DNA of 63,349 bases, the filler included, from Ministeria vibrans ATCC 50519 (Eukaryota; Protista; Filasterea), in NCBI GenBank assembly GCA_943704425.1. It is 5 parts of 5 records of this genome, joined end to end, with 100 filler letters (N's around TTAATTAATTAA, not from the genome) between each part and the next. Parts side by side here need not be neighbours in the genome. Positions count along the whole stretch, not along the records: positions 1 to 31,925 come from CALSCP010000939.1; 4 more parts are not named here. The stretch is one strand, 5' to 3'. Numbering within the stretch: the stretch's first letter is position 1; each line of letters opens with the position of its first letter. Position numbers and translations under genes: made by a program. Of this stretch, positions 1,939-31,925 are shown piece by piece. The notes under the pieces were generated by a model. The model ran no database searches, was not told the origin of the DNA, and was given only the letters and a program-made list of their open reading frames with translations.

Positions 1939-2283
1939 TAATTAAGGTAAAAAGTCCCTTCTCCGTTATGTCGCTTTGCTTATACTCTATAAAAACTATA
2001 TAATGAATAATGAATGAATAATCAATAATCACTTTGCTTGATCCGTTGATCGGTTTCTTTAGTATTATATTTTTTTGAACTTTTTACTTTTGACTTGTGA
2101 CACATTTTCAAAAAAAAAATTCAAAAACAAACATGAGCTCAATTGACGAAACGCTGCCTCTCGATCTCGACGACGCGTACGTACAACCATAAAGCATCAC
2201 ATTCTAGTGTGTTTCTCGAGCGAGCAGTACACTCATGTGCCTCTATTCGCTCCTGTAGGACGGGCTTTCTGCACGACGCAACA

Positions 2284-5177
<2,894 letters not shown>

Positions 5178-10110: not shown

Positions 10111-13100
10111 TTACACGGAAGAGTCATCGACAGCGCCACCAAAGCGGCGTCGACGGTTTAGAGGCGAAATCACACTGTCGCTGTCGACAGAGACATTGCG
10201 CGAGTGACGTCCCAACACAACAGAGCCACTGGTGACCTTGGCCTCCATGGCGGGCAGCACAGCCTGCTGTTCGGGCTGTGGCACTGCTGCTGGCTCCACT
10301 TTGCCTTGGATTGCCGAAATATGCTGCTCATACCCATCAGTGATCATCTACACAAAAACAAAAGAAAATAAAAACATGAGAAGGATGTTTTTTTTTTTTC
10401 GTACCTGAGCATTGGTCTTTGGGGCAAGTTTCTGCTTTGCACGATCCGACGCCCGACCAGCCACAAACACGCGAGTGGAGTCAATGCCCAGTTCCTCATA
10501 GTGCGCAATGTCCTTGCCGCTCCCATAGGCCGCAACATACTCAACGCCGGTCCGTTCACGCGTCTCACGCAACCACTGAGCCTATGACACACACACACAC
10601 AAGACAGTTATCAGTTACTCCCCCCTTTGCTTTCTCTTTTTATTTACCTTTTGCTTGGTCGGGTCCTTGGAGAGTGTCTCGCGCAGACTCACCACTCCAT
10701 TCGGGAAAGAGTGCTAATACACAAACCACAACGTCAATATCTTCGTCCCTCTCTCTATCAGTTTGTCACTTTCGCTCTTTCTATCACTTTCTCTCTCTCC
10801 TCTCTCATATTTTTCGTACCTTGTGCAGCCAATTGACAACCGACCTAAGCTGAATCTTTGGACGGCCACTAATGTAGATGATAAGATAGCCCAAATTGGC
10901 CCAAAACCGCGCAAGTTCAACAGAGCCCCGCTGCAATACCAAAAATAAAAAATAAAAAATAATAAGTACACACTCACTTTTGACTATTCTGCTTTGCAAC
11001 TGACTTGGATGCGAGGAGATGCGCCTGAAATAGACGCAGTTGCAGCAAAGGAGCCGTCAATGGCAAAGATGACGGCCTGGGAGTGCTCGGGAAGCACAAA
11101 GATGTTGCATGACGTGGTGGAGTGGTCGCCACGCACGACAAACTTGACGGGATAGACGCCCACGCCGAGGGTCACGTCATCGTCCGAGTTGATCGTGAGC
11201 TCAATGCGTCCGTGTGAGTTGGTCTTAGCCGTGCCCACGCGCAACCACTCGTCGTGCGGCGGTGCGCGACACACAAACACGACCACTTCCTCCCCCGACA
11301 GCGTCACATAGTCGAGTGCGCCGTACGAGAAGCGCCCGCTCAGCTGCACTGGCTCGCCCTGTCGCACCACCACGTCCGCCGCACGGTGGTTTGCGTAGAA
11401 GCCCTTGATCTTGAAGCGTGTGCGTGTGCGCAGCCACGCCATGCGCGGCTCGCGCATCGTAAATGGCACACTTGTGACAGCAAGTGACGCGTCCGGCGAA
11501 ATGTCGCCGTCGTGCTGAATCAGTTCGCGCACAATAAACGCCGCCACATCCGCCGACTCCCAGTAGCTTGCGTGTAGAATGTGCATCAGGGCGTACGATG
11601 GAAAGTTGTCGAGACCATCGGGACAGGCAACGTGAAAGTCAAGACGTCGCGGAATCGCATCGACACCCCACCAGCGCGCACGCACTCGCTCCAGGGCCTC
11701 CGACCGCACATCTTCATTGGTGGCACTACTACCGCCCCCTGCCGCAGTGGACACCGTCGACAGAATCGACACATTGCTGCCACTGTTGCTAGTGAAGGCG
11801 CCAGTTGTCGTCGCAGCGGGTGCACTGGTCGCGACTGTGTACAGCGACAGAGCAGTCGTGTCGGTGTCGGAGCGACCAAGCACCGCACACAGCCACTCCA
11901 CCACACGCGAGTGTTGTGCCGACATGGTGTGCGGAGGGCAGCCAAGAATGTCGGCAGCACGCGCAGAGTTGCCGTACGCAATGGCATTAGCCGACTGCTT
12001 GGTGGCGCACACAGCACCCTCGATGGAGACACCCTTGCACACGGTGTCGGCGCCATAAACAGCATACGAGAGGACGTCGGCATTCGGCATTGGGTCGTCC
12101 GTTGTTGTTGTCAGCGTCTCGTCAAGCGACAACGACGACTTGTTCTCGGACAGCAGCGGCTTGAGTGTCGTGTGCACACTGACTGGACCTGCAGCACTCG
12201 TCACGGCGTCGCCCAGTGTGAACATGTCGAGCGACACGAGTCGGTCAAGGACATGTGGCGACATGATGAGAAGGACAATCTGTTGGGCGGGAACGCTTTC
12301 GTCGCTCAGGTTGCCACTGCTGCCCTGTTGATGCTGCTGAGAGGCGCGCAACGTTCCGGGTGAGCCGGCCGCCGAGTTGGACAGTGTTGAGCGCCGTGTG
12401 CCCGGAGGGTGGTGATGGTGGTGCTGGTGGCTGTAAAAGGGCGACGAGGGAAGCGCATTGAAGGTGTCGTCGGGGAGTGCGTGCAGGGCGACGGCGAGAG
12501 GCGCAGACCAGTTGGCACTGCTGACCACACCGTGTCCAATGCGTGCCCACACGGAACCAACCGCGGCGGGGCGCTGTTGAAGCACGTTGGTGTGCACAAT
12601 GGTGGCAATCACAATGCCACAGGCACGCGACATGACATCTTGAGGCACCGAGGCACGCACGCCATTGATGAGAACGCTACGAATGATGGAGCCATCGACA
12701 AACTGGTCGGCGCACAGATCTGTGTCCGATACTGAGTCCATGGCAACGGCGCGTGGAGGTTGTCGCGCAAAGAGCTTCTCGTGGCGTTGCACCGCGTCCT
12801 CAAGTGTCTGCGGTGTCTGCAGTCCCAGTGGGAACTCTTGATAGCTGGGCACAACAGCCGGGTCAATCTTGCGAAAGGGAGCGCACAACAGCGGCTCAAT
12901 GCGACCCGCGAGCATGTCAGCACGCAACACCAGGTTGTAGAACTGGCTGCAGGCGGGCGGTGGCGGCACGCTGCCTGTCTCGTTTTGCAGACGGGCCATC
13001 ATGAGAGGGATGGGCGAGCCCAGCGTGAAGAGCAGGTGCACATCAAAGTCAAATGTGCTGTGTGCTTCGCGCATGGTCACAATGTCAAAGACGGCCATGC

Positions 13101-15172
13101 CCCCAACACTGTCACCGACAATGGAGACGCGGCCCGAAAAGCCCGGATGAGCCTGGAGCACACGCGCATAGGCAGCATTGCACTGGGAAACCACATGACG
13201 CACCATTTGACGGTACTCAAGACTCGACAGGGCAAACAGAGCGAGCGTGGAGGGAGCAATTTGCTCGGGGCGCGTGTGCATGAGCACCGAACGCAACTGG
13301 CGATGGACACCCTTGCCCAGCGACGGACACAACACCGACTCAAAGGCAAGACGTTTCCCCGACGCCCCATAGTGCAACCCCAACACAGCACGCGCCTGCT
13401 GCACCAGCGTCTCATGCTCCACCGCCACATCGTCCACGTCGCTCGTGTCCATGGCAAACGCAAGACACTCTCCGTGCACAATAATCACAATGTCTGTTGG
13501 TGCATACGTTGTAGACGCATGCGAGCGACTCGCAGGTCGTTCACACGCCGGATCTTCACCCTCTACGAACGACCAAAGCAAAAAAAAAAAAAAAAAAAAA
13601 AAAGAGAAATAAAAAGAAAAGAGCACGACACACATAATTGTTATGGTTTTTTCACGCGTCCTTTTGTTTCTCACCTGGCGCATCAAAAAACTCGTCATCG
13701 TCGTCGTCACTGTCGTCCTGGGCCTCTTCGGCAATCAGGGTGGCTTGACGGTCAAGCTCGCGTCGTTTGATGGACTCGCGACGCAGACGGGTTGCCGATT
13801 CGCCGTTTTCGACCTCGAGTGAGCGAAGACGATCAATGGCGACGGACGAGCGTCCTTCGGCAGCGGGCAGACTGATGACAGAGACAGAGAAGTCCTGTGG
13901 AGTGGTTGGAATTGACGTGGTAGCACTGGAGGACTGACCGTGGTGAACAGCAGAGGCGCTCAAAGTCAATGGGGAGGGCGGAGCACCCGCGTGTTTGGGC
14001 GCAATGGTAACGTGACGCGGTTGCTTGGGAGGCTCTTCGGCTTTGCCAAAGACGTGTGCGAGTGCTTGTGCTGTCTCCACTTCGTAGTTGCGAATGTCGC
14101 CAATGGTCATGCCGTGGTACTCGTCTTGCCAGGCCCACGCCTGGCGATGTGCGACGACCATGGTGTTGCGCAGACCGTGCGCGTCAATGAAGCGCTCAAG
14201 TTTCGTCTGGAAGCCCCAGTACTTGGCTTCGATACGGCACAACTTGTAGGCGCACATGATGGTGGGGTGCTCGTCGAGCCAGTTGGCCGTGAGCGGTCCG
14301 CGACCCGTCCGCGCCGACTGGAACAGCTTGGGGTCTTCGGCAGCGACGTACTTGCCCGAGGGCACCGCATCGTTGACAAGGTCCATGTACTCCACCTCGC
14401 GCTGCGCCAACTCGTCCGCACCCAAGTTGAAGACGTTCTCTTGCTCACCGCGATCGTCAAAGTACATCGTTTCGACGTCGAGCGAAAAGTTTTTCAGAAA
14501 GGCCGTTGTGAACTTGGTGCGAGTGTACGGATAGTCGTTCCATGCCTGTAAAGAGAAAGAGAGAGAAAGAGAGCGAGAGAGAGAGAGAGAGAGAGCCAGC
14601 AGGCTCGTCAGTCAAACTGCACATTGCAATCCCACAGCAACTGCTAGCGCGCCATTCGTGCGCACCGCAAAACGGTCTCAGATCGCACACAAAGTCCCTT
14701 TTTCGCTTGGCACAATTAAAAAAAAGAAAGAAAAAAAAAAAAAAAAAAACAAGCACTGACCTCTTCGGAAAGACTGAGGGCAGTTTTGGGCACAAGCTGC
14801 TTCACCCAGCCTGGAAGACGCTTGCCGATATGGTACGTCTTCTGCGTGTACTGTCCTTGGCCGGACGGGCCCGGACCATCTTCGTACGGCCGGTTAACGT
14901 GGATTTCAATGCCGCTGGGCACGACAAAGAGCAAGGAGAAGGTCAGTGCGATGTCATCGAGAGCATGGGGGGAAGGAAGCAATCAGAGGATTTTCGTCAA
15001 ATGCGAAAGATGACGTTATTATTTTTTTTTTATTTTGGTCTTATTCTGCCAAACCTTACCTGCCGGCGCCTTCGCTCTCATGGCGACTCTTCTTGGCAAT
15101 CATATACAGCTGGGCGATGCGGTACTCGTCCACCGTCATGGGCATATAGATGCGATACTCCTTGATCAACAT
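10111..15172 (-). CDS. PITPNM: Membrane-associated phosphatidylinositol transfer protein (Nir/RdgB-alpha): PITP, FFAT, DDHD and LNS2 domains
   Basis: N-terminus MLIKEYRIYMPMTVDEYRIAQLYMIAK; QSARTGRGPL...MCAYKLC; FFAT motif DDDDEFFDAP; GDSVGG; LFTLGSP; HASYWESADVAAF; LNS2 VIFAIDGSF and AAYGSGKD. Confidence 0.95.
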
Positions 15173-15406: not shown

Positions 15407-17961
15407 ATGGTATGGTTGACCGACAATATTCATCTGCAAAGTCCACTCCTCTAACAAACCTTCACATTTTCCAAAACCAAAAAAAAAAAAAACGAAAAAT
15501 AGCAATACTTCGAAACACCCACCACACCGGCGTCACAGACCAACGGGCGGCGGGACACAGTTGACCCATACGAGGTGGATACCCCCGTGTCATTCGCGCC
15601 CATCGCCAGTGTCGGACCAAAGGACAGTCGAGGTACGAAAATTCAAAAATACGCATTGTTCTTGTGTGTCGCGCTGTTTTGACAGTCCCTCGACCCTCCA
15701 CAGCCGTTTTGTCGGCGCTTCGAGCGCTTCAAGAGAAAATAAGGCGTCTTGAAGCCGAAAGGGCACAGTCGGAAGGCTCGTACAAAGCATTGGAGCGCGA
15801 AGTGACTCATTATCAGGTAATGCACTTAAGGTGGATCGTGTTGGAAAATTTGAAAAAAAAAAAACTCAAAACTGAATTTGCGCTATTTAGGAGCTGCTGG
15901 AGCGCGAACGGCTGCTGCAGTCACACATGGGCGAGAGCACTACCCGGGGTGGGCGTGCTGCAACGCAGTCGTCGTCGGACGAACGAGGGACAGTGGAAAG
16001 TGACACAGCCGGTAAGAGACGCACTAAAGGAGATTGGCGCGCGACTGAGATTGCGTCGTGTAGTCTCGGAGGATCTGCGCGCGGCCGAGGAACGATCGCG
16101 CCAGCTTGAACGAGAACTTGCCACTATTTCTGCTCGATTGGAAAACATGCGCATGGAAGATCGGTTAGGAGAAGTGCTTGAAGTGCAAAACCAACCTCTC
16201 ATGTTGTGTCGTAGTGCTGAGCGTGGAGCAGAGGGGAAAGGGGCGTACCGAGGTGGGAATGGCACAGGGCGATTTGCCACGAAAACAACAACCACCGTCC
16301 ATGCTGCCGTCGAAGAAGAGGAGAGGCACGAGATGATGCATCAGCATGGCTATGGCACGACACACGGAGGAGGAGAAGGCGGCGCGTGCGGCGGCGGGTG
16401 TCACCGCGGCGGTCTCTGTCTGTGCCACCACGCAACCCTCGTGTGCTGCGCTGCAGGCTGCGGAGCATGTCGTTGTAGCCACTCATTGCAAGTGGGATCG
16501 GGTGGGATGAACAGATGTGGCCAGGAACAGGGGCACCAACGCAATGGACAGGGGAAGGGACAGGGACAGCAGCGCGGTGCGCGAGTCGACTACGACAATT
16601 ACACGTACGACTACAAGAGTGAAGAACAATCGCGCCATCCGCCGTCGTCGGCGGGCGTTCGGTTTGCCGACACGCAACAGCAGCAGCAACAACAACGACA
16701 CGGGAGTGACCATGACGACGACAGCAACCACGAGGATGATGATGAGGGCCTTGAGCTGGGTGATAGTGGTGGTGAGGCGACAGAGTATGCAAGAGGAGGA
16801 CGTACGGGAGGGACATCACGCGGATCAGGGGCAGACGACATGCCATCGTGGGGGCATGGCGACGCAGAAGGGATGGGTGTGCGCCCTTCACGAAGCACTG
16901 CACGACCCGCAGGAGGAGCACCAGTGTACAATGGCAGTGGAGCAGGAGGACCGTTGACGGGTGGTCCACTTGACGACGATGCATATGGGTCGCACTTGGG
17001 TCATGATGGCCGACGAGTGCCCATGCCGCCCCCGCAACACGAGTTCTTTGTGGGCGGGCCTAGTGGTGTGCCTGTGGAGAGCACTGTAGTGCCACCCACG
17101 AAGAAGAAGATGAAGAAAGACAACTTGAAGAGGAAGGGTAAAAAACAGCAGAAGAAGATGGGCGGCGAGTCGTTTGAAAGTGCTCCTCCACCACCCGCCA
17201 CAGCCACAGCAGCAGGGCGTGGCGGATCGCGGGGCAGCGCAGCGCGGGGCAACGCAGCTTTGGCGTCGTTGGGACGCGCGACTGTGTCGAGTGCGGCGCG
17301 TGAGGAGGGCAAGACAAAGAAGAGGAAGAGCGGTGTGCAAAGGGAACAGTATGACTTTGAGCAGGAACTGCCGTTTGTCGTGGGACGCACGGGACGCTCG
17401 TACTCGGTCAGTGCCAATGTGCAGCAGGTGCTGGCACTACTCAAGCATCACGTGCCCTCGGCATGCGACATCTGTGATGCGCCCGGCGTGCAACGCCTGC
17501 TCGCCGATGCCGACGCTGAAACGCACGAGGAGTTGGGAGCTGTGCTTGCCCAGCTGCAGCGCGAGCGCGATCGCTTGGTCTATGAGCAACGCGAGTTGAT
17601 TGGCGCGCGTTCTTCGTCGCATGCGAGTGAGCCTGATCTGGAACGGGCCATTGAGCGACTCGGCGAGCGCATTAGGCGCAAGAAGGACCTCATTGCAACT
17701 CTGCGTCGCTACATGAAGGAACACGCGCAGCGCATGGGCAAGAGCCGCCCCACATCCACAGTATCAACAAGTGCTCATGTGCGTGTGCGTGTCGCAGAGC
17801 GCGCAGTGAGTGCACCGGCCAAACGCGCATCTCTTGCTAGCGCCATTGGGCCGCGCGGCAGTACACACCCGGGCGTGGACCGGACCAAGGTGTTGCGGGC
17901 ATTCCGTCTGCTCCAAGATGGCCTTGCTCAGGCACAGGTTCAGTGGGGCGGCGCTTATTGA
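15407..17961 (+). CDS. CEP57: CEP57/translokin-family centrosomal protein
   Basis: SR|AVLSALRALQEKIRRLEAER (Cep57 N-terminal coiled coil), LPFVVGRTGRSYSVSANVQQVLALLKHH (PINC-like motif) and EELGAVLAQLQRE (MT-binding domain). ATG|gtatgg micro-exon at 15407. Confidence 0.85.
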
Positions 17962-19197: not shown

Positions 19198-20421
19198 CTA
19201 TCTCTTGGTGGAGAGTGGTCGCGAGGGAGTGTGCGAGGAAGCACGGGACATGGCGGTGGAGACGGCGGCATTGCAGACGCATTCGGCACAAACACGGACG
19301 GGGGAGTCAATGCGGACGGACGGGAGAAGAAGGCGAGTGGAGGAGCAAAGGGCACAGACAACCTTGCCGCACTGGCGACAGTGGTGACGACGGTTAAAGG
19401 TGCCGAAGCGACCTTGCTTGCAGACCATGCAGCGAGTGACGGCGCGGTCGGGAACCCATTCGCGACGGCTGGGAGGGGGCTGGCCGGCCAGGAGGGTGGG
19501 AGAGGCCGTGTGTGCGGTGGCCGAGTCGTGCGGGACACGAACGGACTGTTGTTGCTGTGAGTGTATGGGTGGCGCTGAGGTGGTTCGTCTTCTGGAAGAT
19601 AACGGAGCGTCCGGTGGGAGCGGTGGTGGTGCCCTGTGTCCGTTTAAGGGGGCTGCTGGAGTGGGAGAGGGCGAGGAGGAGGTGGAGGGGACTGGAGGTG
19701 CGGGGACAATGGTGTAGTCGGCTGTGTTGAAAGAGACGCGCCGTTTGGAGTCCATGCGACGTTTGAGTCGTGGTGAGAGGCTGCCGTGACTGATCGTTTC
19801 GGAGGCTGGTCGAGGCTTGAGTGCCGATGTTGGCGCTGCACTGGCCATGAAGTCGTCTCCAAGCGTCTTGGCGTACAGCTCTGGAAAGTGCGTTCGCAGA
19901 ATTCGCATCGTTCCAGTAGGTACCTCTTGCCCTCGCGTTAATGCCTGCAATACGAAGAAGCACGTAAATACACGAAGAGGAGGGGAGAGCGGAGCGGAAG
20001 GGAACGAGAGAGAGAGAGCAGACCAACCTGATCGCATTCCTGCACATCCTCGGCGATTTGACGGTACATGACTGCGCCGATAGAGCCTTCGCTGAACCAT
20101 TCGCGTGCTACAACGCGCGAAAAGGGTCAGTCTCGGAGGTGGAGAGAGAAAAGAGCAAAAATTCCAAAAACACATACACAGACTGAGCACGGCAGAAAGA
20201 AAGCGCGCTAAAGGAGTGTCCAAGGAGGGAATGGAGAATACAGCACTCGAGGGTGCAGCTGTGGGTGCGAGGAGTTGCGCATCAGCAGTTTTTGTGGTAT
20301 CAGACTCCGAAGACGACTCGCCAATCGCCACTGCAGACGGTTCGGAGGTCGCAGGAGTCTCTGAGATGGCCAACGATGCAAGTTGGTCTATCTCTGGAGA
20401 CTCAGGAGCGCTCAGGTTCAT
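19198..20421 (-). CDS. FYVE zinc-finger (PI3P-binding) protein
   Basis: WVPD...CMVC...F..FNRRHHCRQCGKVVCALCS...RVCAEC: the WxxD, RRHHCR and RVC signatures are all present. Confidence 0.9.
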   Translation of the reverse strand: MNLSAPESPEIDQLASLAISETPATSEPSAVAIGESSSESDTTKTADAQLLAPTAAPSSAVFSIPSLDTPLARFLSAVLSLCMCFWNFCSFLSPPPRLTLFARCSTRMVQRRLYRRSHVPSNRRGCAGMRSGWSALSLSFPSAPLSPPLRVFTCFFVLQALTRGQEVPTGTMRILRTHFPELYAKTLGDDFMASAAPTSALKPRPASETISHGSLSPRLKRRMDSKRRVSFNTADYTIVPAPPVPSTSSSPSPTPAAPLNGHRAPPPLPPDAPLSSRRRTTSAPPIHSQQQQSVRVPHDSATAHTASPTLLAGQPPPSRREWVPDRAVTRCMVCKQGRFGTFNRRHHCRQCGKVVCALCSSTRLLLPSVRIDSPVRVCAECVCNAAVSTAMSRASSHTPSRPLSTKR

Positions 20422-20542
20422 CAATATTTTGAAAAATAATAATTGGAAATTTTGGAATGACTCTTTATCTACTAATCAGCAATCTAAGAAACAAGATAAC
20501 CAAAATAAACTTGTTCATTCTTTCTCGCACGGATATGGGCGT

Positions 20543-21793: not shown

Positions 21794-24112
21794 ATGATGA
21801 AACTGGAGCAGAGTGACCCGACGTGGACGATCCGGCGGGTGTTCGCAAAGGGCTCGCCAGAGAGCAGTGCAACCGCAGACGGCGCGGGCCCGCCGCAGTC
21901 GCTGCCGAGTGTCTGGGAGAAGCGAGTCATGCTCGTTGTCTTCCTGCGTCACTTGGGCTGTCGTTTCTGCAAGCATGCACTTGCGGCTGTGAAGGTGTGA
22001 GTCGCTCGTTCGTGTTTCCCTGTCGCACTTACCGTCTCCTCCTCCTTCTCTTGCAGTCTATTTCGCCCCAGTTGCGTCGCCATGGCGTTGCCATTGCGTG
22101 TGTAACCCTTGCTGCTCCCGCACAGGCGCAGGCGTACATGGCAGACACTGATTTTGCCGATGAGATGTATGTTGATGAGAATCCTGATGGCCCCTCGAGC
22201 TATCGCCAGATGCGCCTGGTGCGCGACGAACGCCTCCTTGACAACGACAAGACTCCGAAATTGGCCGAGGAGATCCTGGCGGCAGGCTTCGAGGACGGCG
22301 GGTATGCGCGCGACGACGGTAATCCGTGGAATGGCGATGTGTTTCAGCTGGGCGGTGTCTTTGTGCTGGGCGAAGGAAACGCCTGTAGCTACGCCTACCG
22401 CTCGCAGTTTGCCGGCGACATGCCGCCTCCAGCCGAGTACGCGACGGCCGCACTCAATGCGTACATGGCGCAGAACCTCGACCCATACGACAGGACGACA
22501 CAGGTCGTCGACGATTTTGTCTTTCCCACTACCAATGCTTGGGTAATAGCATGAGAGAGAAAGAGGGGGGGGGGGGGGGGAGCGAACAAGGAGGGAGAAT
22601 GGGAGACAGGACAAACCGTACATCATAGTTACAAATCTAAAACTGTGTATTTCTTTCTCTTGCAGATGTCTCGCCTGCGCGCTGACAGTAAGGTTGCGCC
22701 GCCCTCGGTTGAGGTGGTGGAGGCACTGGTGGCAGAGAAGGGACGCAAACGAGCACTGTCGGTGCGAACAGTTACTGATGAGTCACATCAGTCGGTTGCG
22801 CCGCAGAAGAAGAAGGAGAGCGTTAGTAGCGATGCGGGGAGGGCGAAGCAGAAGAAGGCTGCTGCCGTTGAGAATGCTACAGATGATAATGGTGTCGTTG
22901 TTAGTAATGAGTATGATGGTGGAAGCGGGCGAGTGGCACTGGGGCTGACGGTTGCCGGTGCGGCGGTTGTTGCGCGCTATGTATTGACAGGACGTGGCAA
23001 GATTGGTGCGGCACTGCTTAGTGTTGCGGCTGTGGCATCCATTGTGCGACACCTCTATTCACGACGACGCGCTGGTAGTAACAGTGTTGCTACTCCGCGC
23101 GATTCGACTGCTGTATGTCCATTCAGTGGACAGACACTATACACTCCCAAGATGATTGACCAGCTGAGTGTGACGTCGGGCCGTTTGCAGTGCGACTGTG
23201 CGCCTGTCATTGCCAGTCTGCCTTTTGATCTCATTACAGGAGACATACCAGCAACACCAGCAACAACAGAGGCAGCACAAGAGGAAGGAGAAGAGGACCC
23301 AGAGGAGCCCACCGATGAAGAAGTGAGTTGTGTCTTATCTTGCCTGCCTTTTGCCTTTGATTTTTTTTTCTCTCTCCCTCTCTCACTTTGTCTCTATCAC
23401 TTTGATTTTTTTTTCTCTCTCTCCCTCTCTCACTTTGTCTCTATCACTTTGTCTCTATCACTTTGTCTCTATTGCTTTGTTTTGATCCCCCATTTCTCTC
23501 TCTCATGTGTTAGGTGTACCATGTCACCAACTGTTACATCCGAGAGTTCCTTGCCAAGCCCCATCCTCTGTTGGGTCGCTCTGGGCCCACTTGTCCCTTT
23601 GTACCGACCGCACTGCGCCTCGACAGTATCTACACTGCCGTTGTGCGCACTGGAGTGTGCCCACTTGAGGAGATGCGCGATAATGTCAAACGTGCCTCAT
23701 TAGCCTTTGTCGATCGGTATGCATAAAATACCAATCTATTCTTCCTCTCTTTTTTCTTTTTGTCTCCTTAGCTTCCGCGCTCTCCCTCCCACCGACGGCC
23801 GCAAGACCATGTACAAGGCCATTATCCTCGTGTTTCCCGACGTGCCTCTTGATGCTGCCCCACTCGTCATTGATCAGGCTCAGCTCGAGCTCAAGGCCCA
23901 TTTCACCAGCCTCGGCCTCATGATTGGTACACACACATCGTACTCTTTTCTTTCTCTCTCACATACACACACACCTCGTTTTTCTGTGCTCATTAGGTGA
24001 GTTTCATCTGTTCAACAATGCGTCGGGTCTGCACAACCCGACTTTCTTCCCTCTGCGCACTCCCTATCCGAGCATGGCAATGCGTAATATGGTTCCAAGG
24101 TAAAACTACACA

Positions 24113-24180
<68 letters not shown>

Positions 24181-24190
24181 NNNNNNNNNN

Positions 24191-24269
<79 letters not shown>

Positions 24270-24494
24270 CGCGCGGCGCTTATACACTGTTGTAGTCTCT
24301 ATCATACTGTTCCGACTTTGCTCTGACTCTTTCTCTCTCTTTACAGTGATATTGTGTTTATGGGCCCTGAGAGCTACTCAGTCGATCAACGCAAAACTTT
24401 CCTGAACAATTTTATCAGTCGCTTTGAGCAGTCGGGCGGAGGCGAAAAGGAGCTCAGTGTCGCGCGCGAACACCTCCTCAAACTCAGCTCTTGA
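21794..24494 (+). CDS. Fusion protein: PRXL2/AhpC-TSA_2 thioredoxin fold (CxxC) + hydrophobic hairpin + bacterial DUF6875-like domain; 7 exons
   Basis: VVFLRHLGCRFC and GDVFQLGGVFVLG...YAYRSQFAGD (PRXL2). The C-terminus reads FLAKPHPLLGRSGPTCPFVP...GLMIGEFH...GLHNPTFFPLRTPYP.MAMRNMVPSD. All splice junctions are phase-compatible. Confidence 0.8.
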
Positions 24495-24640: not shown

Positions 24641-25761
24641 TTAAGCACAGCAGTCGCTCTTTGGCGAAGCGGAAGGGGTCTCATCGAGACGCACTGACCT
24701 CTCCCCTTGTGCACTCGCTCTGCCACTCCCTGTTGCCGTTGCTGCCGCTCCTCTTCCCCCCCCTCCTCCTGTGGTGGTGGTCGTCGTCGTCGCCATACCT
24801 CCTACTGCTGCTGCTTGGATCTTGTCAATGAATCCTTCGCGTCCACTCAAACAGTCCATGCACAGTCGGTCAAACACCTCTTCCACTCCTAATCCCGTCT
24901 AACAAAAAAGAAGGAACACGCACACACACACATACAAATAAGAGTCATGTTTTCCCCCTCCTCCTTGTGCCAAGTTGCCTCTCCCCCTTTGTACCTTGGC
25001 ACTCGTCTCGACATACACAACAGCGCCGACGCTCGAGGCAAATGCCTGCACTTCTTCCTTGCTGACTGTGCGCGTCAGTTTCCCGCCGCTCTCCGACAGC
25101 AGGTCTGTTTTTCCCACAACCACCGCCAGACGACAGGTGGGCTCAACGCGCTTCACAAGCTCCGCGTAGTGCGTCAGCTTGGCAAACGTCTCCCTGTCCG
25201 TCGCGTCAAACATGAGAATCGCTCCATTTGCACCACGACAGTAAAATTCCCGAATGCTCTGGTACTTTTCCTCGCCCGCCGTATCCTGCAACCGCCACAC
25301 AAGAAAATGGTGAGACATCGCCCAAGCGCTGTTCAGGCCGGCGACACGAGCAACAGAGACAACACACAACACAAAAAAAGACGGACGGTAGAATCCCCTT
25401 GCCCCCCCGCCCTACCCATATTCCGACGTTGTACGTGTTCCAGATCTTCAGCACAAACGCCGCACCGATGGTCGCTTGCTACAAAGTGCGAAAACAGAAG
25501 CCGTAAGTGGCAGGAGAGGCGAAGGAGGCGAGTGGAAGAAGGAAAGTCGACCGTGACACCAACTCTTTTTTTTTTCTCTCTGTTTCTCTCACCTGGGGCT
25601 GAAAAACGCCATTGACGTAGCGTGACAAGAGACATGTCTTGCCCACATTGGAGTTGCCCAGGAAAATGAGCTTTGCATCGCTGCAGAAGAAGACAACAGC
25701 GGAAAGTGGGATGAGAGAACGTCCCTCGCTTGCTTTGCTGTTACACGCGTGACGGGGGCAT
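24641..25761 (-). CDS. RAB20: Rab-family GTPase, Rab20-like
   Basis: LGNSNVGKT, TIGAAFVLKIWNTYNVGIW|DTAGEE, YCRGA, ETSAK|TG and C-terminal CCA prenylation motif; the FxLKxWxxYNxxIW pattern is typical of Rab20. Confidence 0.75.

Positions 25762-26289: not shown

Positions 26290-31925
<5,636 letters not shown>

Follow-up and report, generated by a model that had tools for sequence, protein, structure and literature searches.

A spliced gene of Ministeria vibrans predicted to join a PRXL2-type redoxin, a membrane hairpin and a cytochrome P422 (DUF6875) domain in one protein

The gene located at positions 21794-24494 (+ strand) of a 63,349-nt stretch of DNA from the filasterean Ministeria vibrans ATCC 50519 (assembly GCA_943704425.1; the whole stretch is referred to here as the window) appears to belong to a conserved, so far unstudied eukaryotic variant of the recently described cytochrome P422 family. 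The best overall explanation of our findings, and in our judgement a probable one, is that its product combines a redoxin, a hydrophobic hairpin, a cysteine-containing extension and a complete P422 domain, and that these parts may act together. New here are a cysteine triad confined to the eukaryotic proteins and a match of the predicted P422 fold to that of AglA. The catalytic identity of the C-terminal domain appears well supported by its sequence; the interesting part is the meaning of the fusion.

Gene structure

Searches were made exon by exon, and two orthologs, P0009 (Pigoraptor chileana, 656 aa) and P0162 (from locus L004), represented the whole protein in the alignments, tree and folds. 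The gene comprises seven exons with a coding total of 1953 nt (650 codons), and its six introns (62, 123, 191, 55, 70 and 247 nt) all run GT...AG with pyrimidine-rich acceptors; intron 1 excepted, their G+C content lies below that of the exons. The seven exons and two of the introns are as follows, a slash marking the place of an intron within a motif.

21794-21994, + strand: exon 1; start codon, then the redoxin's N-terminal portion with the CxxC motif CRFC at 21959-21970
22057-22542, + strand: exon 2; remainder of the redoxin domain, the last residues being the conserved ...PTTNAW
22543-22665, + strand: intron 2; GT...AG, 123 nt, in phase, with a G17 run and a TGA in frame at 22552-22554
22666-23322, + strand: exon 3; disordered linker, hairpin (22930-23058), CP dipeptide (23116-23121), LYTPxxID...CDC (23137-23199) and acidic tail
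23514-23716, + strand: exon 4; opening section of the P422/DUF6875 domain, containing the Cys of the eukaryotic clade at 23532-23534 and RSGPTCP at 23577-23597
23772-23926, + strand: exon 5; P422 domain, with substrate-binding region 2 (SBR2, DQAQLELK) at 23872-23895; SBR3 opens with MIG from 23920
23997-24099, + strand: exon 6; SBR3 (MxGxF) completed as M-I-G/E-F (to 24004), and SBR1 opening with RNMVP from 24083
24100-24346, + strand: intron 6; (CA)n/(TA)n microsatellites, with an assembly gap at 24181-24190 inside
24347-24494, + strand: exon 7; SBR1 completed as R-N-M-V-P-S/D-I-V-F (to 24359), C-terminal helices, and stop codon included

The spliced frame is open throughout, and the CxxC and every catalytic motif are intact. 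Since the reading frame changes between exons 1 and 2 and between exons 3 and 4, splicing is obligatory at these two junctions; exons 2 and 3 lie in a common frame. The junction residues read NAW/MSR (exons 2 and 3), DEE/VYH (exons 3 and 4), MIG/EFH (exons 5 and 6, Gly codon G/GT) and VPS/DIV (exons 6 and 7, Ser codon AG/T), and the seven exons and these in-phase junctions are all as an earlier reading of the DNA, made from the sequence alone (hereafter the sequence-only reading), had described them. An alternative donor for intron 1 at 21997 (GTGAGT) was rejected, as it yields a stop codon; the donor at 21995 reads K/SISPQL, matching the orthologs.

Placed on P0009, the exons map to residues 50-79 (exon 1), 81-222 (exon 2), 450-496 (exon 4), 515-565 (exon 5), 567-599 (exon 6) and 601-648 (exon 7). 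At five of the six junctions the mapping onto single eukaryotic proteins is collinear and gap-free, the junction of exons 3 and 4 lying in an unconserved stretch, and the single residues between the P0009 blocks are accounted for by split codons. Identity to Pigoraptor, the best relative, is about 40-70% per exon: 40% for exon 2, end to end in BLASTP, 73% for exon 6 and 38% for exon 7. Two of the catalytic motifs described below exist only after splicing, SBR3 being interrupted by intron 5 and SBR1 by the gap-bearing intron 6, and because they form across these introns both junctions are independently validated.

The junction of exons 2 and 3 is where a different gene structure has to be weighed, namely two genes, one for a stand-alone PRXL2 redoxin that the TGA at 22552-22554 would terminate and one for a hairpin-P422 protein of ~421 aa with its start codon in the ATG at 22666. 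Exon 3 does open with ATG, intron 2 does contain an in-frame stop, and both products would be self-contained. However, the start of exon 3, MSRLRADSKV, has its homologous counterpart in single-open-reading-frame (single-ORF) orthologs immediately after the conserved AW, where the residues read xx[RK][LIM] (VKRIRADVRV in P0009); read-through of intron 2 gives VIA and then a stop, and the ortholog residues match the spliced reading only. The 123-nt interval is, moreover, a canonical GT...AG intron with the same ...cttgcag acceptor as intron 1, single fused ORFs and complete transcripts are found across many taxa, and database entries that are long and lack the CxxC are gene-calling fragments of intron-bearing fused genes. 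We consider two genes highly improbable, and with the exons collinear on single orthologs and the spliced residues at this junction matching them, the single fusion polypeptide of the sequence-only reading stands; minor separate products could arise by intron retention or from an internal start. That the locus is one seven-exon gene and belongs to the P422 family is a conclusion in which we have high confidence, as far as sequence can carry it.

A non-functional or mis-assembled locus, either a pseudogene or an artefact of the gap, might be suspected from the presence of the gap within the gene and from the draft state of the assembly (2860 contigs). Against this, the spliced frame is open, the motifs and the CxxC are intact, and the gap is intronic: exon 6, the split Ser codon and exon 7 correspond to P0009 residues 567-599, 600 and 601-648, and because no residue is missing the continuity of the coding frame is independent of the gap. 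In addition, an 897-bp metagenome scaffold in ENA (ERZ23497376, L006, SCHR19-1_SAMN09406036_METAG-scaffold_21990) contains a 70-aa ORF identical to exon 4, so that the same or a very close organism was sampled independently; a search of papers for the identifiers of this metagenome found no mention of them. A defective locus is scarcely credible. The gap is probably a collapse inside a microsatellite repeat; long (CA)n and (TA)n microsatellites flank it on both sides (24104-24262). Other repeats seen in the introns are the G17 run of intron 2, within 22557-22581, and, within 23340-23480 of intron 3, a tandemly duplicated unit of the ctctc/cactttgtctctatcactttg type.

The C-terminal domain

The Pfam profile for DUF6875 (PF21780; cut-off 24.5 bits) matches exon 4 (45.3 bits, E 1.3e-11, profile positions 7-64), exon 5 (34.0 bits, E 3.9e-08, positions 64-113) and exon 6 (31.4 bits, E 2.5e-07, positions 115-147), which confirms the family name that the sequence-only reading had given. 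The profile positions abut in order from exon to exon, a six-frame search agrees, and such a collinear pattern is not to be expected of chance or of unspliced DNA. A single copy of the domain is present in the assembly (29.7 Mb, 2860 contigs).

DUF6875 was renamed cytochrome P422 in a December 2025 preprint, which describes a Cys-ligated b-heme family with a reduced-CO Soret band at 422 nm that hydroxylates Trp at N1, C6 or C7 and forms C-S bonds, and whose C-to-S mutants lose both heme and activity (bioRxiv 10.64898/2025.12.11.692455). A C7-hydroxylase role has been assigned to a further member, ZigI, in a JACS paper (PMC13307353). The motifs defined from the crystal structure of Mc170 are RxGxVCP, which contains the axial Cys, SBR2 Dx2(Q/H)x3K, SBR3 MxGxF and SBR1 Rx(M/L)x3Dx2F; the R and D of SBR1, the Q and K of SBR2 and the M and F of SBR3 are the indole-clamp and Trp-carboxylate residues (bioRxiv 10.64898/2025.12.11.692455). 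All four motifs are present in the window at family spacing, as RSGPTCP (predicted axial Cys at 23592-23594), DQAQLELK, M-I-G/E-F and R-N-M-V-P-S/D-I-V-F. The Thr in place of Val in the heme motif is common in the eukaryotic clade; the R, G, C and P of that motif are invariant across 75 aligned sequences, and the residues of the four motifs are invariant or nearly so among 49 fused relatives.

The simplest reading of this conservation is a C-terminal domain that functions as a heme-thiolate oxygenase on a Trp-like substrate, and on these grounds an indole or Trp oxygenase is rather likely. The guess of a heme-thiolate enzyme in the sequence-only reading was right, to judge from the P422 preprint, but its choice of heme motif was not: the predicted ligand is the Cys of RSGPTCP in exon 4 and not that of AVCPF (23116-23121) in exon 3. 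The CP dipeptide of AVCPF occurs at the equivalent place in only ~6-8 of 70 long relatives, which makes it a feature of a subclade and rules it out as a family-wide heme-regulatory motif.

The domain shares with the bacterial P422 proteins (Mc170, Ba855, Ss890, ThnD and ZigI) the Pfam family, the heme motif RxGx(V/T)CP and the spacing of the SBR motifs, with about 35-45% identity between bacterial and eukaryotic domains. The characterized members, however, stand alone as soluble proteins of 180-300 aa, their genes lying in bacterial non-ribosomal peptide synthetase (NRPS) or Trp-metabolism clusters, whereas the protein described here is eukaryotic, intron-bearing and ~650 aa long, with its P422 domain preceded by a CxxC redoxin, a hairpin and a Cys extension. 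Elsewhere in the genome tryptophan 2,3-dioxygenase (TDO) and indoleamine 2,3-dioxygenase (IDO) are encoded, both intron-split (G000:C879:19037-20182 and G000:C957:47557-48851), so oxidative Trp metabolism is present in the organism.

Comparison with the fold of AglA

For the intron-less ortholog P0162 (L004:6364-7338; model m5af29a41c1e1), the C-terminal 325 aa, which correspond to window positions 23137-24494, were modelled with a 75-sequence alignment, giving a mean predicted local distance difference test score (pLDDT) of 88.7, a predicted template-modelling score (pTM) of 0.85, and a fold of four strands with flanking helices. Foldseek found no match to this model in the PDB at E <= 0.001, and its top five rows were all AglA, an arginine N-hydroxylase of the YqcI/YcgG heme-thiolate family (E 0.045, probability 0.92); the Mc170 structure 9X39 was not among its matches. 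With VIA-align, AglA gave a Z score of 7.5-8.1, where ~8 is borderline and may reflect no more than a common arrangement, and a root-mean-square deviation of 4.1-4.5 A for 148-167 residues spread over positions 10-287 of the model; the rows after it were 55-residue helical hairpins, and AglA alone covers most of the domain. AglA is built as a helix 'sandwich' round a four-stranded sheet with a Cys44 thiolate (PMC12866846), and the fold of Mc170 (PDB 9X39) has likewise been described as a sandwich and called unique (bioRxiv 10.64898/2025.12.11.692455).

At the level of sequence, a PDB search with exon 4 returned spurious RecA repeats only, an ortholog profile found no P422 chain in a PDB set from which 9X39 (Mc170) is absent, and PF08892 had no Pfam match in the window exons or in 10 orthologs. 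The YqcI/YcgG proteins AglA and DcsA are described in terms like those used for P422, as a sandwich with an N-proximal Cys thiolate, and likewise hydroxylate the side chain of a free amino acid (PMC12866846), but they have no detectable sequence similarity to P422 and act on a guanidine rather than an indole. The lead towards DcsA/YqcI-type enzymes given by the sequence-only reading receives some support from structure, AglA being the best PDB match. Judged from the model, P422 and AglA appear to resemble each other in structure, and the resemblance may reflect an overlooked family link.

The redoxin domain

Exon 2 matches AhpC-TSA_2 (PF13911) with 41.6 bits in Pfam (cut-off 27, E 1.8e-10) and 43.4 bits in a genome search, and a hidden Markov model (HMM) built from the orthologous redoxin domains scored 41 bits on exon 1 and 129 bits on exon 2. 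The CxxC is present in all 17 fused orthologs. The nearest solved structure to the N-terminal domain, found with an ortholog profile against the PDB, is PRXL2B (9US9; E 1e-14 over ~140 residues), in which CVVC aligns with the CRFC of the window, a CxxC placed at the start of the first helix of the thioredoxin fold. A Protein Atlas entry for P0009 listed sub-threshold PRXL2 clusters only. These matches point to a PRXL2-type thioredoxin-fold redoxin, as the sequence-only reading had proposed, with the thioredoxin-fold domain and the position of the CxxC common to both; the PRXL2 family consists of stand-alone proteins, whereas here the redoxin is the N-terminal module of a heme-enzyme gene. PRXL2B is prostamide/prostaglandin F synthase, an endoperoxide reductase. 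A second AhpC-TSA_2 locus in the genome (G000:C801:14174-14506) is apparently stand-alone.

The hairpin and the cysteine triad

Exon 3 encodes two hydrophobic segments at residues ~89-108 and 113-131, with Kyte-Doolittle values of 1.76 and 1.63, and two hydrophobic helices occupy the equivalent place in most relatives. A word-index protein search with the linker region of exon 3 (22555-23703, region 38-256) found no close relatives of 211-670 aa. Between the hairpin and the heme domain lies an extension, (L/Y)TPxx(I/V)D...CDC, found ~70 residues N-terminal to the heme motif in most of the 70 long relatives and structured in the ortholog models (pLDDT 80-97).

The CDC pair of this extension (window 23191-23199), together with a Cys located 15 residues before the heme motif (NCY, 23532-23534), makes up a triad, all three members of which are present in the window. 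The third Cys is part of a 'CY' pair, in the window protein as in the eukaryotic clade, at a place where 'xW' stands in the bacterial P422 proteins. All three Cys have been lost jointly in two of the 17 orthologs aligned, and in a crude pattern match over wider relatives 59 had both triad features, 24 had neither and 14 were discordant. The triad, newly reported here, was found only in the eukaryotic clade and is to all appearance specific to it; its role may be that of a metal site or of a disulfide relay.

Distribution and origin of the fused form

A HMMER search with exon 4 against 1.84 billion representative proteins gave 238 relatives, many of them 540-715 aa long. In the long relatives the match lies at residues ~390-515, and exon 4 stands at residue 449 of the 650-codon model. 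An N-terminal AhpC-TSA_2 and a C-terminal DUF6875 domain were both present in nine of the ten long matches scanned, and a profile built from 17 fused proteins recovered 44 relatives. The sequence-only reading had called for a search for the same architecture in other taxa, and the fused form was indeed found in many protists: the choanoflagellates Salpingoeca urceolata, Diaphanoeca and Savillea, the other holozoans Pigoraptor and Syssomonas, the foraminiferan Bolivina, the diplonemid Namystynia, Triparma/Tetraparma (Parmales/bolidophytes) and the haptophyte Prymnesium. These records are complete transcriptome ORFs or annotated proteins and represent at least five eukaryotic supergroups. Uninterrupted fused ORFs of 679 and 715 aa were also found on eukaryotic metagenome contigs, where they adjoin myosin and NMD3/WD40 genes.

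The fused proteins are named in public records only as 'hypothetical protein', 'DUF6875 domain-containing protein' or 'peroxiredoxin'. The network in the P422 preprint held sequences of 180-300 aa only, with Rotifera as the sole eukaryotes (bioRxiv 10.64898/2025.12.11.692455), and because of this length filter the fused form lies outside it. A full-text literature search for the family brought up only the P422 preprint and the ZigI paper, and no paper describing a redoxin-P422 fusion was found; 'undescribed', the word used in the sequence-only reading, no longer holds for the domain. A stand-alone hairpin-P422 protein was considered as a natural form and rejected: in the case inspected, P0025 on locus L010, the entry proved to be a fragment cut off by an intron that splits the redoxin domain, the first half of which is held by an upstream ORF, and the hairpin-P422 database entries that lack a redoxin are gene-prediction artefacts of prokaryote-style calling.

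An unrooted maximum-likelihood tree of 119 domain sequences, built with a quick search, is divided by a branch with 99% SH-aLRT support into a group of 27 rows, of which 26 are stand-alone, and a group of 92 rows that include all 41 fused ones; the short rows on the fused side adjoin fused ones and are likely to be fragments. The fused eukaryotic clade appears from this to be a single group. The sequence-only reading had proposed that the DUF6875 domain was acquired horizontally, gained introns and was fused to a thiol-reductase module; as a recent event in this lineage, this would mean a transfer from bacteria, perhaps actinobacteria, and fusion to a host redoxin. The domain is indeed abundant in bacteria, with relatives at 523 genome loci (mostly Lysobacteraceae, Oxalobacteraceae, Acidobacteriota and cyanobacteria); the identity of 35-45% between bacterial and eukaryotic domains is high for a very old split; and the eukaryotic distribution is patchy. 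However, all fused sequences lie on one side of the 99% branch, in a tree that is unrooted and narrow in its bacterial sampling, and that side spans holozoans, a foraminiferan, a diplonemid, Parmales and a haptophyte, so that the fusion predates this lineage. The nearest bacterial groups sampled were, moreover, Lysobacteraceae, Acidobacteriota and cyanobacteria, not actinobacteria. We consider a transfer confined to this lineage very unlikely; the fusion appears to be older than the Ministeria lineage and not a local acquisition, which leaves room for an earlier bacterial origin of the domain.

A search with exon 4 alone against bacterial and archaeal genome contigs gave no match. On three bacterial metagenome loci (L007, L008 and L009) a stand-alone P422 gene lies beside genes for an MbtH-like protein and a FAD-dependent monooxygenase, or beside an NRPS of A-PCP-TE architecture, and two members of the stand-alone tree group sit in such NRPS/MbtH contexts; these settings agree with the natural-product context reported for P422 (bioRxiv 10.64898/2025.12.11.692455).

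Neighbouring ORFs in the window lie at 24899-25372 (- strand), 2143-3660, 10984-13734, 15664-17961, 19198-20424 and 27816-31541, and their contents are a Ras-family GTPase exon, centrosomin motif 1, DDHD/PITM/Ysc84, Cep57, FYVE and an AAA_11 helicase. As these domains are typical of eukaryotes, the assembly is eukaryotic. The neighbouring 916-aa DDHD/PITM ORF gave nothing at E <= 1e-10 in a word-index search, which is odd for such domains.

How the domains might work together

We hypothesize that the C-terminal domain would bind a b-type heme through the Cys of RSGPTCP and, like the characterized bacterial P422 enzymes, would oxygenate L-tryptophan or a close indole-carboxylate, while the two-helix hairpin would place both soluble domains on one face of the membrane. 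The tethered redoxin, possibly with the Cys triad, would then work in the same reaction cycle, and might do so in either of two ways. It could provide thiol-derived reducing power to supply or reset the heme cycle, perhaps through the Cys triad; alternatively, its target could be a reactive N-hydroxy or peroxy product, which it would reduce much as PRXL2B does an endoperoxide, or it could protect against uncoupling.

A number of observations hint at functional coupling of the redoxin and P422 domains, namely retention of the fusion across supergroups, the invariant CxxC, the joint loss of the triad, the structured extension, and the pTM of the full-length Pigoraptor model, which at 0.71 despite ~140 disordered residues is above expectation for two independently placed domains. 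Other observations speak against the proposal. The pTM is an indirect sign of domain docking, taken from a model, and the hydropathy of both exon 3 segments barely exceeds the usual transmembrane threshold. A dithiol redoxin is chemically odd as a one-electron donor. The HMM of the fused N-terminal domain, which scored 129 bits on exon 2 as positive control, detected no PRXL2-like gene even at E <= 10 in the 9541 ORFs of 80 bacterial P422 loci with 10-kb flanks, so bacteria give no independent sign of a redoxin-P422 pairing. Finally, the electron donors of P422 are ferredoxin and ferredoxin reductase (bioRxiv 10.64898/2025.12.11.692455). Weighing these points, we regard functional coupling as evenly balanced between true and false, and any specific thiol-driven mechanism as unlikely at best.

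A bolder form of the proposal is that the fused enzymes are self-sufficient, ferredoxin-independent oxygenases in which the redoxin, relayed through the CxC...C triad, drives or resets the P422 cycle. A parallel is offered by the self-sufficient P450 fusions (P450BM3, P450-PDR/RhF), in which a heme-thiolate oxygenase and a redox module are likewise joined in one chain; in these, however, the electrons take a known path through a flavin or Fe-S reductase, whereas the partner in the gene described here is a dithiol redoxin, and no flavin or ferredoxin domain was detected. We hold this form of the proposal to be decidedly unlikely. If it were true, the triad would be a disulfide relay or a small metal or Fe-S site packed on the heme domain, and metabolites derived from hydroxy-tryptophan would be expected in choanoflagellates, filastereans, haptophytes and other protists.

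A different function for the fusion would be peroxide handling in place of Trp hydroxylation with O2 and external electrons; the heme domain would then be a peroxygenase or peroxide isomerase and the redoxin its PRXL2B-like (endo)peroxide reductase, much as in other fusions that pair a peroxide-forming with a peroxide-converting enzyme. The closest solved relative of the N-terminal domain is prostamide/prostaglandin F synthase, no ferredoxin-like module is fused, and the eukaryotic clade differs near the heme motif, in CY for xW and in the CxC extension. However, the indole-clamp and Trp-carboxylate residues of Mc170 are kept, and are near-invariant in the fused clade, which argues for a Trp-like substrate, and peroxide handling seems to us quite unlikely beside an indole or Trp oxygenase with a redoxin in tow.

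Implications

To our knowledge, P422 has so far comprised only small, soluble bacterial enzymes that need ferredoxin and that carry out otherwise rare hydroxylations at N1, C6 and C7 of indole. A conserved eukaryotic form, predicted to be anchored in a membrane and equipped with a thiol redoxin and an extra Cys triad, poses the question of whether a dithiol module services a heme-thiolate oxygenase or processes its reactive product. The match to AglA raises the possibility that P422 belongs with YqcI/YcgG to a single broader class of heme-thiolate amino-acid hydroxylases distinct from the P450s. For the PRXL2-type redoxins, whose substrates are mostly unassigned, the fusion offers a 'Rosetta stone' hint. 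A second question that it raises is which Trp-derived chemistry takes place in the unicellular relatives of animals and in algal and protist lineages.

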